Shown piece by piece: positions 10,845 to 17,630 of a DNA stretch of 64,000 nucleotides. The notes beneath the pieces were generated by a model. The model was not told where the DNA came from, ran no database searches, and saw only the letters and a program-made list of their open reading frames with translations. The position numbers and the translations under genes were made by a program. The DNA comes from Rhodosorus marinus CCMP1338. Its lineage: Eukaryota > Plantae > Rhodophyta. Numbering within the stretch: position 1 is the first letter of the stretch; every line of letters starts with the position of its first letter. Where the stretch lies: contig JAMWBK010000005.1 in NCBI GenBank assembly GCA_029953675.1, forward strand, positions 2,542,001-2,606,000, in the 5' to 3' direction.

Positions 10845-13297
10845 ATGATGGGATACGGACCTCAGGCGGGAATGTCTGGGCTTCTGAAGGAAGGTACGAA
10901 GCAGTTATCTGGAGTAGAAGAGGCTGTTTTGAGGAACATTGATGCATGTAAACAGTTGAAGACGATTCTCTGCACGTCAATTGGGCCGAATGGGATGAAC
11001 AAGATGGTCAAGAGTTACATGGGCAAATTGTTTGTTACTTCAGATGCCGCTACGATCGTTAGGGAGCTCGAGATCGTACATCCGGCAGCGAAGGTACGCC
11101 GAGTTTGGATTTTGAAGACTGTCGATATGTGAGGTTGCTGACCCCGTGCTGGGCACGATACCCTTGCAATGCTTCTGTTCAGCTCCTAGTGACAGCGAGC
11201 GAGTCTCAGGAAAAAGAATGTGGAGATGCAACAGCGTTGGTGATCGTTTTGGCAGGAGAACTCTTGGAAAAGGCGGAAGGTCTACTGAGGCTTGGTCTCC
11301 ATACGAGCGATATTATCCAAGGTAGCTTTTTCAACTCTTCTTCTAGACCTAAGTCTTCCTTCCGTCCCTCAGTGACTGAAACCAAACCAACCGCCGCCAA
11401 ACTAGGTTATGAAAAGGCTGGATTGGAGGCGTGCCGTATGCTACCCAACTTGGTCTCGTATGAGCTCGGAGACATGAAAAACGTATCGGAAGTTTCACAC
11501 GCATTAACCAGCTGTATTTCCTCGAAAATGCACGGCCTCGAGGACGTCATCGCACCGCTCGTTGCCGATGCGTGCATCTCAATTTTGCCAGCCAATATCA
11601 ACACCTTCTCCGTCGAGAATGTCCGAGTGACAAAGGTAAATGAGAAGAAAACAGCCAGGCATTCTATCGCTCCCGAAGCATCGTGATCATTGATCTGCTG
11701 CATGCTTTCAGTCAGTCCACGCATTCCTCTCTGCGGCTTTCTAGAGAACTCTGATTCCATGGTCAATGATTCTGAAGCCGGATTCTGATCGTCGACCTCA
11801 ACTGCTTGATCCCATCGCTTCTCACAGATTCCAGGTGCTTCAGTAGCAGATTCAATGGTGATCAAAGGTGCTGTGTTGACGAGCAACGCACAAGGAGTTG
11901 TAAAGCATGGTACAGTACCGTCTTCATTCATGAAAACGGAGCCTGTGATGAGGGCAGCAAAAGCTGAACAAAGGCTCTATTCGAACCCGCGTTTGCTCTT
12001 TGCTGATTTCCGGTCACAGTTCGGGACGCTAAGGTAGCGATATATACATGTGACTTCGAGATGGGACAGGCGGAGACAAAAGGAACAGTGCTGCTGACCT
12101 CTGCACAGGAGTTGATGGATTATAACAAGGGCGAGGAAAGAAACTTGGAGGAGAAAGTGAAAGATATCGTTGACAAGGGTGTGAATGTAGTCGTGAGCAC
12201 CAAGTTTGGAGAAGTTGCTGCGCATTTTCTTGACAAGTACAATGTGATGATGGTGAAGGTACGGCTAGGCACCGTCTTAAGACTTTGCTCTTCGGAGAAG
12301 CGACTGATTGACATTTATTTCATGGAAACGTCACTTTCGCTTTGATCAGTGTCCTTCCAAGCACGAGATGAGGAGGATAGCTAGGTCGACGAAAGCGATT
12401 GCACTTCCAAAGCTCCAGCCACCGACAATCGATGAGATTGGAAAATGTGACGTCGTAAGTGTTGAAGAGATAGGATCGACAAGATGCATTATATTCAAAC
12501 AGGAGCAAGAGGGATCGCGTGTCGCAACTATTGTGGTTCGTGGGAGTACGACGAACATGCAGGAAGATGTCGAGAGATGTGTTGATGACGCCGTGCACAA
12601 TTACAGAGGAATGTCAAGGGTGAGAAAACGAGTGAATGTTCAAGGAGATTTCTGAGAAGAGCTGACACGGACTTACGCCGTCCTTTGGCTTACCGTTTTC
12701 AGGACCCGAGGTTTGTTGCTGGAGCAGGGGCTTCAGAGATCGAAGCGGCTAGGTTCGTCGACAAAATGGGCGAAAAGGCTCCAGGGTTGGATCAATATGC
12801 AATTAGAAAATTTGCAGAGGCCTTGCAGATAATCCCGCGAGTTCTAGCGCAGAACTCTGGTCAAGATCCAGGGGTCGTAAGTTGCGCGATGCTTATTTCT
12901 ATACGTAGAACGTTGACGAATACTGACGGGTCTTGTGTCCTTCTTGTTTTCAAATACGTAGATGCTGAGCAACTTGATTGCTGCCCACGAGGGTAACAAC
13001 CCGTACATTGGAGTGGACATTGACGAGGGTATGCGGCTAACAAACCCTACAAATCTTTACTTACGCTAAGATAATTCTCACCCGGAATACGATTCGTGTG
13101 TTCTGTTAGGGACCGTCTGCAATGCTATGGACAAGCAGATTGTCGACCACTTGGCAACGAAGATGAACGCAATAACCTTGGCCACAGAAGCCGCGTGCAC
13201 AGTGCTCAGAGTCGATCAGCTCATAATGGCCAAGGCCGCGGGTGGACCCAAGCCCCGCGACATGATGGGGCCGGATGACGCAGATGAGGCCCCTTAA
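10845..13297 (+). CDS. CCT8: T-complex protein 1 subunit theta (chaperonin CCT8), multi-exon
   Basis: SGVEEAVLRNIDAC, TSIGPNGMNKM, VTSDAATIVRELEIVHPAAK, SQEKECGDAT, VVRGSTTNMQEDVERCVDD, GAGASEIE, APGLDQYAIRKFAEAL and a C-terminal IIMAKAAGGPKP. Confidence 0.95.
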
Positions 13298-13558: not shown

Positions 13559-16500
13559 CTAGCGGATGACCTCTAAGAGTTCTCCAGTTAGACTGAATGT
13601 ACGAGCTTGCGTTATCTTCACTGTTACTAGCTTCCCTCGCAACTCGTCGATGTTGCCTTCGAAGAAAGTCAGGCGGTTCGTACGTGTTCGTCCGAGCACC
13701 TGACCATTACGCCAAAAAAATGCTCTATGATTAATTCGAGTAGAGTGACCCTTGTTGACCTGCTCAACTAACCTGTGTCGGGTCTTTGTCGTTGCCTTCC
13801 TCGACAAGGATCTCTTCAGTCCTTCCCAGATAGCGTTGACTGCGTTCGTGAGCATCCTTTGCGGTCTGCTCGTTGATTATTCGCAACCTCTCAGCCTTCA
13901 CGTCCTCAGCAACTTGGGTATCCCAAATGGCGGCTACAGATCCAGAAAGATGTTTTCGATTAAACACAGGAGGCCCCACGTGCAAATTCTAATCAAAGCG
14001 AGGGTGGTCCTAAAGAAACCTACCTGGAGTGTTCGGCCTCGGAGAGTAGGCAGCAGTATGTACCGTATCAAATTGGATTTCTTCCATCAAGTCAATGGTA
14101 TGTTGAAACTCCTCGTCAGTTTCACCGGGAAATCCTACTATTGCATCCGCCGAGATAGCAGCGTCAGGCATGTACTGTTGCATTGATCAGAGAGAAGGCT
14201 CGGGAGTGAGAAACGATGACACGAACTCGAGGTCGTGCTCGCGGAGAGTCAGCCGAAACAGACTAGAGCGTGCATGGGTGGAAAACTACCATTCTGATCC
14301 TCTCAGCAATTTTCTTAAAGCGCTTTGCTGTGTACCCTCTCTTCATTTCCTTCAAAACCTTGTCATCCCCGCTTTGGAAGGGTACATGGAAGTACTCGCA
14401 CAACTGAAGGAAAAACGAAACCAAGAAGTCCGGTCCCGAACCCGAAGTACCAACTGTTAGCCGATTACTGTACAGCAACCTCACTGCTGCGATGCTTAAG
14501 GTCACCTTGGGAAGCTCATGGCAAGCTTTAATCAGCCTGCCTGTCATGTATCGGGGATGGGAGGTGGTGAAACGAATTCTCTCGATCCCATCCACATCAT
14601 GCACAAACCTCAGCAAGTCCGCCAAAGAATCCCTTGGGCGCAAGTCCCGTCCATAAGCATCAATATTCTGTCCGAGCAACACAATCTCTTTCACCCCCTG
14701 CTCGGCCAGCTGCTTAATCTCTTCCTTGATATTTTCGCGTGGACGACTCTGCTCCAATCCTCGCGTGGCTGAATCGGAATGAAACAACAGATATAGGCTG
14801 TTAGATCGCTCAACAAATACCGCTGGCCTCGCGCTTTTACAAAATCCCCGGCGACCGCAGAGCAGCACGGCGTTGACAAAATTCGTGAAGCAGGAATGGT
14901 ATCCAATATCCGGGCTGTACTTACTCGGAACGACGCAGTATGAACACCTCTCGTTGCAACCGTAGATTATATTTACCCATGCGGTAACCTTGCTATTCCT
15001 TTTGGGTTTTGAAATATCCTCCATGATATGAACTGGCTCGGTAGCGCAGACCTGAAACGATAACGGAGTACGCGGATAAGGTCATAGTCCATAGGCTTTC
15101 TGGGAATTTGATACGCTCACTAGGCTTACTTGGTTGCCTTGGTTGACCGAATCGAGCAATTCACCAAGCCGATTTGAGTACTGTGGGCCCATCACAATAT
15201 CCACCTCCGGAATCCGGCGCAGCAGTTTCTCCCCTTCTTGCTGCGCTACGCATCCCGAAACAACAATCGTGACTTCCGGGTTTTGCCACTTGCGCCTGGC
15301 ATGTCTGCCAACATACGAATAGACTTTCTGTTCCGCATGATCTCGGATAGAGCACGTATTGAACACTATCACATTCGATCTGAACGGATCATCGATTTCC
15401 TTGAAACCTGCTGCTTGAAGTTCCTGCGCAAAGAAAAGAAAGACCCGCAAATGATCGCCACTTAGAGAGCGCAAAGCAAGGACGAAGCCTGCTCCGTAGT
15501 GCAATCTCGGCCGCATGTGTGGCTTGCTCACTCGGTGAGATTGAGCAAGAGCAGACAAGCCTGCAGTCTACAGAGGTATAGTTGGACTACGCGTTCCATG
15601 AAAAGTGCAGCCTACCCCTGACATCTTCTCCGAATCTGCCTGGTTCATCTGGCAGCCCATTGTCTGCACGCAGTAGGTACCCTTGATCATCTCCGGGATA
15701 GCGTCCCTCTGGTTCCTCGGAATCTGGGTTAAAGGGACCGGCGCACCTCGTTTTGACAAGGAGGTTTGAATAGTATGTCTCGCATCTTCGACCACCAGTA
15801 CATGCCATCCACGCTTAGATTTCACCTGGCGAGGACCGGAGCAGCAATTGCACTTAGTTTCGAAAACCCCGCAGTCACCAGCCGTCAAAGAGAACTAACG
15901 AATACAAACCTTCTGCAAGGTGTTGGCACGGACACCAAAAACAATGTCCAGAATTTCGGGCTCAAGGTCTTCTGAATCCTGTTCAAACCATCCAAGGTCA
16001 CCACCTGTATTTTTAACGAGGAAGACGCACCAAATATGAGGATCCTTAAGTAAGATTTATTTCTTTCCATCTAAATCAGAATGGAAAAGCTCCTCCAGAA
16101 AAACAAAGGCACCAATTTCACAAAACTTACCGTTGGCCTTCGATATCTCGCAAATCGATAGCCCCGGCGCTAGATCACGCAAGGAAGTCCGCTCGGATTT
16201 GACAAGCTCGATGATATCATCTGCGAGCTCCTCAGTTTCAACTAATATGTGTCGTAGCTTCACACTCTCCACCTAACGAAGAAAAGCAGGAGCCCATATT
16301 AGAGCCACTTCTGTGATAAAACACAGGTGAACCGATGAGGAACACGCCTCCAAATCAAAGCAGCTCACATTTTCAGGATCGAAATCATAAAAAATCGGAG
16401 GAGGGTTCTTTGCCGCCACTAAAACAGTATTCTCCTCAGGCGCCATCGCGCATACAACCCGTCGATCCGGAGCTCGAGCCTGGAAAAAAAAAACAAGGAA

Positions 16501-16639
16501 GGGCAAAACCTCTACTATCAGACCACGAAACCCTCAGAAACGCACCCACCACGCTCCGTGAAACTTCAGACCCCCTCACCTCAATTCTCAAACTCTTCGA
16601 ATCCATCCACCTCCCCAAAGAGGGGATAAAACAAACCAT
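13559..16639 (-). CDS. miaB: Plastid-targeted tRNA-i6A37 methylthiotransferase MiaB with an N-terminal parvulin/PpiC prolyl isomerase domain
   Basis: MiaB motifs [35 protein letters not shown], radical-SAM [42 protein letters not shown] and a TRAM domain ([21 protein letters not shown]). Exons 16639-16532, 16479-16369, 16272-16131, 16004-15910 and 15825-15615 splice in frame, placing HILV..SIC..GGDLGWF..GWHVL ahead of MiaB. Confidence 0.9.
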
Positions 16640-17630
16640 TCTCCAACAAACACAGAAAATGAACACGCGCCTTTTCAAAACAGTATGATAAATTCCTCTG
16701 TACTAAGGATAGTTCGTATACACGTCTCACTCCAACAGGCACCAACATCAACCCCTTCCCCCCCCGTCCCTTCCCCACTCCCCCAAAGTCTCTTCCTCTA
16801 TATATATCCCATTTTCCCCACTGCGTTACCCGTCAACAAACCAAAAGTTCCACGGACCAAACCCTCAATACTCCCCCTACAACAAACCCAAACTAAAATG
16901 CATCAGTGAATAAATTTCGATTATATAATATTACTACTTTGGGACAAATATTCTAAACGGGGTTGGTGATTTGTGTTCAAACTTAGTGATTGGAGTGTTT
17001 TGTTGTGTTTTTAATGTTTTGAGATTGTTGAAGATCGAGGAGGCCATCGGGGGACGGTGAGATGGTGTGAGTGGATTTGGCTGCGGATTTCTGGATGGTA
17101 AGGGAGCTGCTTGGATCAAATACTGTTTCCGTGAGCGCCAGACCTACACTTTTCCCGGTGTGTACACGGCTCTGAGCTTCGTGTGATTGCGGATGAACAC
17201 ACCGCATTGTTTGAATCGCGGTAGTGGGTGGTAGTGACCAGCACTGATGCGGGGGTAAAGGGGGTTGATCGCGTTGCTTGCTAATTACGGATGTGCTTTC
17301 AGGATAAGTTGCGACTTTTTGAAGTAGCGAACGCGCTTCGTCTTCACACGCTGCCTCTCTCTCCCCTCTTCCTCCCTCGTGCCCCCCAGGCATGAAGGTC
17401 TCCAGACTCTGCGCAGCAACTCAAATCAACCTCCTTCGTCCCAGTATCGATGCTCGACAGACAACCTCTTTGGGATGTGTTTATACTGCTCCTTGAATTT
17501 TGTACCGTGTGCTTCCTCTTCCTCTTCATCCACCCCCAAATTGATTCACTTCAACATGGCGTTTCATGTCGGACGTAAGTATCATCCGTCAGGAGAGCAG
17601 AGGCTGACCGGATCTTAGGTAGATATTGAG

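Follow-up and report, generated by a model that had tools for sequence, protein, structure and literature searches.

A parvulin-MiaB fusion protein with a predicted plastid transit peptide in the red alga Rhodosorus marinus

Gene structure and transcript evidence

The window analyzed here, a 64-kb stretch of DNA from Rhodosorus marinus CCMP1338 whose positions are used for all numbering, contains a minus-strand gene that joins a parvulin (a PpiC-type peptidyl-prolyl isomerase, PPIase) to the tRNA methylthiotransferase MiaB in one protein. The gene was assembled from 12 exons, with a coding sequence of 1869 nt and a product of 622 residues, and all 11 introns are GT-AG with compatible phases (Table 1). 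The start codon is the earliest in-frame ATG downstream of the stop codon at 16705-16703. The exon assembly, together with matches to Pfam and to the NCBIfam model TIGR01574, confirmed the original prediction, made from the DNA sequence alone, of one gene encoding one protein with a transit peptide, a parvulin domain, a linker and a cyanobacterial-type MiaB. The five phase-compatible 5' exons that it had placed were exact in their coordinates, and all of the peptide strings that it had quoted were found.

Within a single open frame, exon 5 encodes the last parvulin strands, then the linker, and then the beginning of MiaB, including the first cysteine of the auxiliary cluster. Because this exon alone encodes both modules, the fusion is independent of any predicted splice, and a merger of two neighboring genes was rejected on the same grounds. 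The expected linker of about 35 residues, with no stop before MiaB, was likewise present in this single frame. Since Cys194 is encoded on exon 5 together with the parvulin C-terminus and the linker, a MiaB with its complete set of cluster ligands can be produced from this gene only as a fusion.

Transcript data were available from two relatives. Contig L001, from a close relative with approximately 89% nucleotide identity, aligned in blocks that coincide exactly with exons 1-5, which confirms that introns 1-4 are spliced as modeled. The upstream start is also present in L001, as MACFIPSFGRW, which supports the ATG at 16639. Beyond exon 5 this contig is unspliced through intron 5 into exon 6 (window 15827-15392; L001 527-956), so that the parvulin exons and exon 6 lie together on one RNA. 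The same relative yielded the 95%-identical protein P0002, which begins within intron 5 and continues through exons 6-12 spliced as modeled; introns 6-11 were confirmed by this transcript-derived protein and by a second contig, L002. The latter, from a relative with 75% amino acid identity (protein P0001), is a fully spliced transcript with an uninterrupted open reading frame (ORF) of 629 residues and the same four domains.

The closest relative also provides the one reason to suspect an annotation artefact, in which adjacent parvulin and miaB genes would have been wrongly joined: its contigs split into a parvulin-only ORF (P0123), which ends 18 codons into the retained intron 5, and the MiaB-only ORF of P0002. 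However, because L001 spans intron 5 on one RNA, P0123 and P0002 are the halves of a single intron-retaining RNA. A separate MiaB-only mRNA in this relative was rejected, since P0002 starts inside the retained intron and lacks Cys194, the essential cysteine that exon 5 holds together with both modules. The fused ORF, moreover, is intact in the spliced transcript L002 and in dozens of species. The transcripts thus do not resolve into two separate mRNAs, and an artefact, which the sequence itself refutes, is extremely improbable. The retention of intron 5 could represent unspliced pre-mRNA, or it could be regulated and give a stand-alone parvulin.

Table 1. Positions of the parvulin-MiaB gene, its parts and flanking features in the window
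Feature	Window positions	Strand	Residues	Remarks
Parvulin-MiaB gene	16639-13559	-	1-622	12 exons
Exon 1	16639-16580	-
Exon 2	16479-16369	-
Exon 3	16272-16131	-
Exon 4	16004-15910	-
Exon 5	15825-15616	-
Exon 6	15423-15130	-
Exon 7	15051-14925	-
Exon 8	14768-14506	-
Exon 9	14403-14290	-
Exon 10	14174-14024	-
Exon 11	13933-13773	-
Exon 12	13699-13559	-		includes stop
Stop codon	13561-13559	-
Intron 5	15424..15615	-		192 nt, phase 0; splits the first 21 MiaB residues from the remainder
Intron 8	14404..14505	-		102 nt, in frame, stop-free
Putative plastid transit peptide	16508..16639	-	~1-44	exon 1 and start of exon 2; range spans intron 1
Parvulin (PpiC-type PPIase)	15784..16272	-	58-150	exons 3-4 and the 5' 42 nt of exon 5
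Linker	15679..15783	-	151-185	35 residues, wholly within exon 5; read in one open exon
MiaB part	13562..15678	-	186-622	Pfam and NCBIfam
UPF0004	15675-15187	-	187-285	104.1 bits, cutoff 27
Cys194 codon	15654-15652	-	194	auxiliary cluster
Radical_SAM	14976-14088	-	330-501	107.3 bits, cutoff 29.5
TRAM	13838-13574	-	555-618	47.9 bits, cutoff 21
G-/purine-rich tract	~16750-16850	-		~110-200 nt 5' of the start codon
TCP-1/CCT chaperonin gene	~10845-13297	+		Pfam Cpn60_TCP1; multi-exon

Domains of the encoded protein

The N-terminus of the protein, MVCFIPS in the window and MACFIPS in L001, has a Phe at residue 4, and an N-terminal F-motif has been described for rhodophyte transit peptides (PMC7038456). 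An aromatic residue within positions 2-12 was present in 53 of the 72 fusion proteins that start with Met. In the AlphaFold2 model of the ortholog P0001, the matching 48 N-terminal residues were disordered, as expected of a transit peptide. These features suggest that the Rhodosorus parvulin-MiaB is a nuclear-encoded, plastid-targeted protein.

The parvulin part matched the Pfam families Rotamase_3 (residues 58-150; 44.2 bits, cutoff 22.5) and Rotamase (34.5 bits, cutoff 21.7). The candidate catalytic residues His65, Cys98, Ser139 and His144 align with the active-site residues of Escherichia coli PpiC, as do the Ser96-x-Cys98 motif and the Gly-Gly-Asp-Leu-Gly-Trp segment (105-110), and the predicted parvulin signature, H..SxC..GGDLG..GWH, is thus present. 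The nearest solved sequences were those of Cbf2, PrsA, SurA and PpiC. No WW domain was matched by Pfam in the window protein, and the loop after the first parvulin strand, VETEELADD, is acidic, with no basic phosphate-binding loop. On these grounds of sequence the domain is a Par10/PpiC-type parvulin; a Pin1-type, phospho-specific parvulin was rejected, because there is no WW domain, the loop is acidic and the nearest solved sequences are not Pin1. Compared with E. coli PpiC (1JNS), the PrsA domain (1ZK6, 6XD8) and Campylobacter Cbf2 (3RFW), the window parvulin has the common fold and the His/Cys/Ser-Thr/His set, and PpiC, PrsA and Cbf2 are also without a WW domain or a basic phosphate-binding loop. 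It differs from them in that it precedes a radical-SAM (S-adenosylmethionine) enzyme, has a red-alga-specific lead-in and is acidic. The lead-in, RFYDF.P.D[VI]EA, is conserved, and so is a segment that follows the domain, VED.RH.L. The net charge of the parvulin is -11 in the window protein, against a median of -4 over 73 fusions, and a tRNA-binding role was rejected as unlikely for such an acidic domain. Between the window and the close relative, the parvulin segment differs by 24.5 synonymous and 6.5 non-synonymous changes, with a ratio of non-synonymous to synonymous rates (dN/dS) of 0.063, which indicates that the domain is under strong purifying selection.

The MiaB part exceeded the cutoff of the MiaB equivalog model TIGR01574 (462.9 bits versus 355.3), and the MtaB, RimO and MiaB-like-B models each scored below their own cutoffs on the window protein. 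The ligands of the auxiliary [4Fe-4S] cluster are provided by C194, C230 and C264, and the radical-SAM CxxxCxxC motif by C336, C340 and C343; all six cysteines were invariant in an alignment of 64 sequences. With 64-66% identity to cyanobacterial MiaB, this part is, as far as its residues tell, a complete cyanobacterial-type MiaB. It shares with bacterial and cyanobacterial MiaB (e.g., that of Bacteroides uniformis, PDB 7MJV-7MJZ) the UPF0004, Radical_SAM and TRAM domains and the six cysteines. In contrast to these proteins, the Rhodosorus protein has 185 extra N-terminal residues, comprising the transit peptide, the parvulin and the linker, and is encoded by a nuclear gene with 11 introns whose product is predicted to be plastid-targeted.

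The AlphaFold check that had been proposed with the original prediction was run on the ortholog P0001 (75% identical), using an alignment of 63 sequences, and the model was matched with Foldseek. The mean predicted local distance difference test score (pLDDT) was 87.7 and the predicted template modeling score (pTM) was 0.85. Confidence was high throughout the parvulin, the pre-domain segment and MiaB, and in the greater part of the linker, for which pLDDT ranged from 66 to 88. Both folds were recovered. The MiaB part superimposed on the solved MiaB 7mjw_A with a template modeling (TM) score of 0.91 and a root-mean-square deviation (rmsd) of 2.3 Å, within a range of 0.89-0.91 for 7mjv-7mjz. The parvulin part superimposed on PrsA 6xd8_A with a TM score of 0.90 and an rmsd of 1.6 Å, and human Par14 (3ui4) was also matched.

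Distribution, origin and public records

Among the best 120 matches to the full protein, approximately 50, with total lengths of 580-820 residues, carry an N-terminal extension, and most of these have a precomputed Pfam Rotamase match beside the three MiaB domains. The remaining matches, approximately 70, are cyanobacterial MiaB proteins of 445-462 residues. None of these listed cyanobacterial proteins, the only bacterial matches from which absence in bacteria is judged, contains a parvulin domain. In red algae, the fusion was found in Galdieria partita, a Galph1 entry, Compsopogon, Rhodosorus, Gracilaria domingensis, Gracilariopsis chorda, Agarophyton chilense and Cyanidioschyzon merolae (BAM83418.1). 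Among algae with red-derived plastids, it was found in Chrysoparadoxa australica, the xanthophyte Heterococcus and Chromera velia (A0A0G4HEZ9); the survey was not directed at green algae, glaucophytes, diatoms, haptophytes or cryptophytes. The domain order of the Rhodosorus protein is the same in its database orthologs (KAJ8905243.1, BAM83418.1, A0A0G4HEZ9, and those of Gracilariopsis chorda, Galdieria partita and Chrysoparadoxa australica).

A neighbor-joining tree of the MiaB part split the sequences exactly into 53 fused and 16 cyanobacterial ones. For the parvulin part, a single-sequence search returned one match only, and a profile search with 26 parvulin domains listed proteins of up to approximately 224 residues and missed the fusions. 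An exhaustive profile search ranked proteins by summed score, which favors multi-parvulin proteins, and its matches were re-scored per domain. In a parvulin-domain tree, the smallest split with all of the fusions otherwise contains only short proteins. Those inspected were truncated gene models, which end at the intron after the parvulin or after 'MGC'. No verified separate gene for the MiaB-linked parvulin clade was found in the searches run, and the clade was seen only attached to MiaB. Independently, the Chromera methylthiotransferase has been classed among genes derived from red algae (PMC3516247). The simplest reading of this distribution is that a single fusion event took place after primary endosymbiosis, in the red-algal stem, and that ochrophytes and chromerids later acquired it by secondary endosymbiosis, along with their red-derived plastids. 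If so, the fusion is a clean shared-derived character with which red-algal genes can be followed into complex algae.

The novelty implied by the original prediction did not hold. The gene is already public as GenBank KAJ8905243.1 ('hypothetical protein NDN08_001751 [Rhodosorus marinus]'), which is UniProt A0AAV8UVV7 ('Peptidylprolyl isomerase', 645 residues), and dozens of public proteins, BAM83418.1 among them, show this architecture in precomputed Pfam results, so it is already widely annotated in algae. Names of orthologs in the databases vary among 'hypothetical protein', 'Peptidylprolyl isomerase' and, for BAM83418.1, '2-methylthioadenine synthetase'. We found no published description of a parvulin-MiaB fusion in the full-text literature, a coverage that leaves out most subscription journals. 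The parvulin-MiaB is thus a real, ancient variant of MiaB whose architecture is not new to databases, and its value does not lie in new sequence: the proteins are public and domain-annotated, and the gap is one of description and experiment.

All exons that the public model KAJ8905243.1 (P0243; in the 90% cluster of P0123) shares with the window model are identical, including the translated intron 8. Two corrections to it are needed. The public model starts at the second Met (MDSK...) and consequently loses the start at 16639-16607 with the Phe targeting motif. It also leaves intron 8 (14505-14404) unspliced, which adds 34 residues within the radical-SAM domain; in P0001, P0002 and the fused and cyanobacterial homologs inspected, ELPK is followed directly by LCEYFHVPF or its equivalent. 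Sequences labeled as Rhodosorus, or clustered with it, diverge widely: P0243 is identical to the window, P0123 and P0002 show approximately 95% protein (89% nucleotide) identity, and UniProt A0A7S2ZBX3 'Rhodosorus marinus' (P0029) is merely 55% identical to the window protein. The strains that bear the name Rhodosorus marinus seem to be deeply divergent or mislabeled.

Proposed function and flanking features

MiaB is a model radical-SAM enzyme, and its auxiliary cluster is consumed or remodeled in each turnover. We know of no account of MiaB maturation or repair in organelles. As expected from its family, the MiaB module would methylthiolate N6-isopentenyladenosine at position 37 (i6A37) to its 2-methylthio derivative (ms2i6A37) in those plastid tRNAs that decode UNN codons; for chloroplasts, data on ms2i6A37 in such tRNAs have been summarized (PMC8877259). 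The reaction would use up two molecules of SAM, and plastid ferredoxin would supply the reducing equivalents; the apicoplast MiaB of Plasmodium falciparum (PF3D7_0622200), for which electron supply by plastid ferredoxin has been proposed, is a precedent (PMC8844926). PF3D7_0622200, which is dispensable in blood stages, is the MiaB of a red-derived plastid, and the Rhodosorus MiaB is predicted to act in the plastid of a red alga.

With slightly more confidence than doubt, we favor an explanation in which the red-algal plastid contains a two-module protein derived from a fusion of single origin, with the parvulin as an active isomerase that aids MiaB maturation in cis. The parvulin would be an active, non-phospho-specific prolyl isomerase that works chiefly in cis, helping the unfolded MiaB chain to fold and mature after import, before or during the insertion of Fe-S clusters; these are the weakest steps of the proposal. 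In a few lineages, it may have drifted toward a purely structural role. Over the 73 fused proteins, the first His was conserved in 67, the Ser/Thr in 71 and the second His in 65; the Cys was conserved in 53, and 18 had Asp at its position. Asp is the usual alternative at this position in active Par14-type parvulins. For this reason, the Cys-to-Asp change in Cyanidiales leaves activity possible but is at odds with an essential thiol. In E. coli, MiaB was co-purified with the cyclophilin PpiB, and to a lesser extent when PpiB carried an active-site mutation (PMC7353009). Because of this co-purification MiaB may be a PPIase client, which is the one piece of outside support for the role in cis.

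Several observations weigh against this explanation. In Galdieria (P0009, P0010, P0040), the parvulin shows His-to-Gln, His-to-Leu and Cys-to-Asp changes and the domain is still present. In Compsopogon (P0003/P0121), the SxC...GGD core is deleted and there is no Pfam Rotamase match, and again the domain is still present. Such degenerate parvulins are easier to reconcile with a scaffold or docking function than with catalysis. The role as a chaperone in cis is proposed by analogy alone, and we hold it with modest confidence. The MiaB tree carries no bootstrap values and includes neither green nor glaucophyte sequences. Finally, a spliced intron 5 was not seen in the closest relative, whose only observed transcript contigs retain it.

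The degenerate domains bear directly on the possibility that the parvulin is mainly a non-catalytic scaffold or docking module, for which isomerase activity would not be needed. It would lend stability to MiaB's N-terminal cluster domain or bring in a partner, for example ferredoxin, SUF proteins of cluster delivery or MiaA. Retention of the domain in Galdieria and Compsopogon despite the loss of catalytic residues is in line with this idea, as are the conserved flanking segments on both sides of the domain and the confidence with which the P0001 model shows the pre-domain segment and the greater part of the linker. However, most lineages retain the full catalytic set, and the Asp variant, being normal in active Par14-type parvulins, is no sign of decay. 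Furthermore, the MiaB core alone could give the observed pTM, so that this value does not prove a fixed docking. We consider a mainly non-catalytic function unlikely.

The conserved catalytic residues, which argue for an isomerase, would also be expected if the parvulin were a general plastid isomerase that acts in trans (e.g., on translation components) and was fused to MiaB for shared targeting or expression, in the manner of a Rosetta-stone protein. The domain is of a free-standing type and is carried on a linker of 35 residues, and retention of intron 5 would give a stand-alone parvulin ORF of approximately 224 residues. We regard this possibility as unlikely, given that the parvulin clade was found only in attachment to MiaB in the searches run, and that more than 1 billion years of obligate linkage and the conserved linker argue for a function related to MiaB.

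The chloroplast parvulin-rhodanese STR12/PAR3/AtPIN3, to which the original prediction had pointed, does exist in plants (PMC8716364; PMC9797600). It and the Rhodosorus protein are both PpiC-type parvulins fused to an enzyme of sulfur chemistry and targeted to the plastid, as predicted here for Rhodosorus, and they differ in the partner, which is a rhodanese in plants and MiaB in Rhodosorus. Rhodanese (PF00581) had no Pfam match in the window protein, whereas P0127 has one. In the Arabidopsis and wheat parvulin inventories, the rhodanese fusion is the sole multi-domain parvulin (PMC8716364; PMC9797600), and the parvulin genes of photosynthetic organisms have been counted as only three (PMC8716364). 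Of the domains clearly not linked to MiaB, those of the algal parvulin-rhodanese proteins P0127 and P0128 scored best with the fusion profile (83.7 bits). In a tree of 90 columns they are neighbors of the fusion clade without falling within it, at a mean distance of 0.645-0.656. Their identity to the window parvulin is 40-41%, compared with 34-40% for bacterial PpiC/PrsA-type domains. The claim that the MiaB-linked parvulin is of the same PpiC type as that of STR12 therefore finds weak support in this proximity, given the small margin over the bacterial domains; a special relationship between MiaB-linked and rhodanese-linked parvulins is possible. As a further variant of the parvulin-rhodanese architecture, a cluster from Heterosigma akashiwo (P0274, P0323) has two parvulin repeats followed by a rhodanese domain.

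In parallel to STR12, the parvulin cysteine might be a redox sensor or a persulfide carrier that feeds or repairs MiaB's auxiliary cluster, the donor of sulfur, in keeping with the sulfur-enzyme module suggested in the original prediction. Such a role would be in agreement with the presence of P0127 and P0128 among the nearest non-MiaB relatives and with the redox sensitivity of the homologous Cys of PIN1At (PMC8716364). However, the replacement of Cys by Asp in 18 of the 73 fusions, including those of Cyanidioschyzon and Galdieria, would not be allowed for an essential thiol, and the similarity to the rhodanese-linked domains is barely above that to bacterial PpiC/PrsA. This makes a sulfur or redox function of the cysteine highly unlikely.

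A broader form of the idea would place MiaB-linked and STR12-type parvulins in one lineage of plastid-specific parvulins that matures or repairs enzymes which spend their own sulfur or Fe-S clusters; turnover of red-lineage MiaB would then depend on the parvulin through a proline-gated opening of the auxiliary-cluster site for re-sulfuration. This we consider quite unlikely.

An isomerase domain welded to MiaB throughout the red algae sampled, which range from Cyanidiales to Florideophyceae, as well as in several algae whose plastids are of red origin, hints at a specific and testable requirement in MiaB maturation. The fusion is of relevance to radical-SAM enzymes, plastid translation and plastid evolution.

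Two features flank the gene. The G-/purine-rich tract ggggagtggggaagggacggggggggaagggg lies just 5' of the point at which the alignment of the relative's transcript begins (~16736) and may be part of the promoter. On the other side, the TCP-1/CCT chaperonin gene is convergent with the parvulin-MiaB gene, and the two stop codons are approximately 260 bp apart. The same convergent layout is kept in the 75%-identical relative, where the single transcript contig L002 spans both genes. Because the genes converge, the layout is conserved and L002 covers both, their 3' ends probably overlap or abut.

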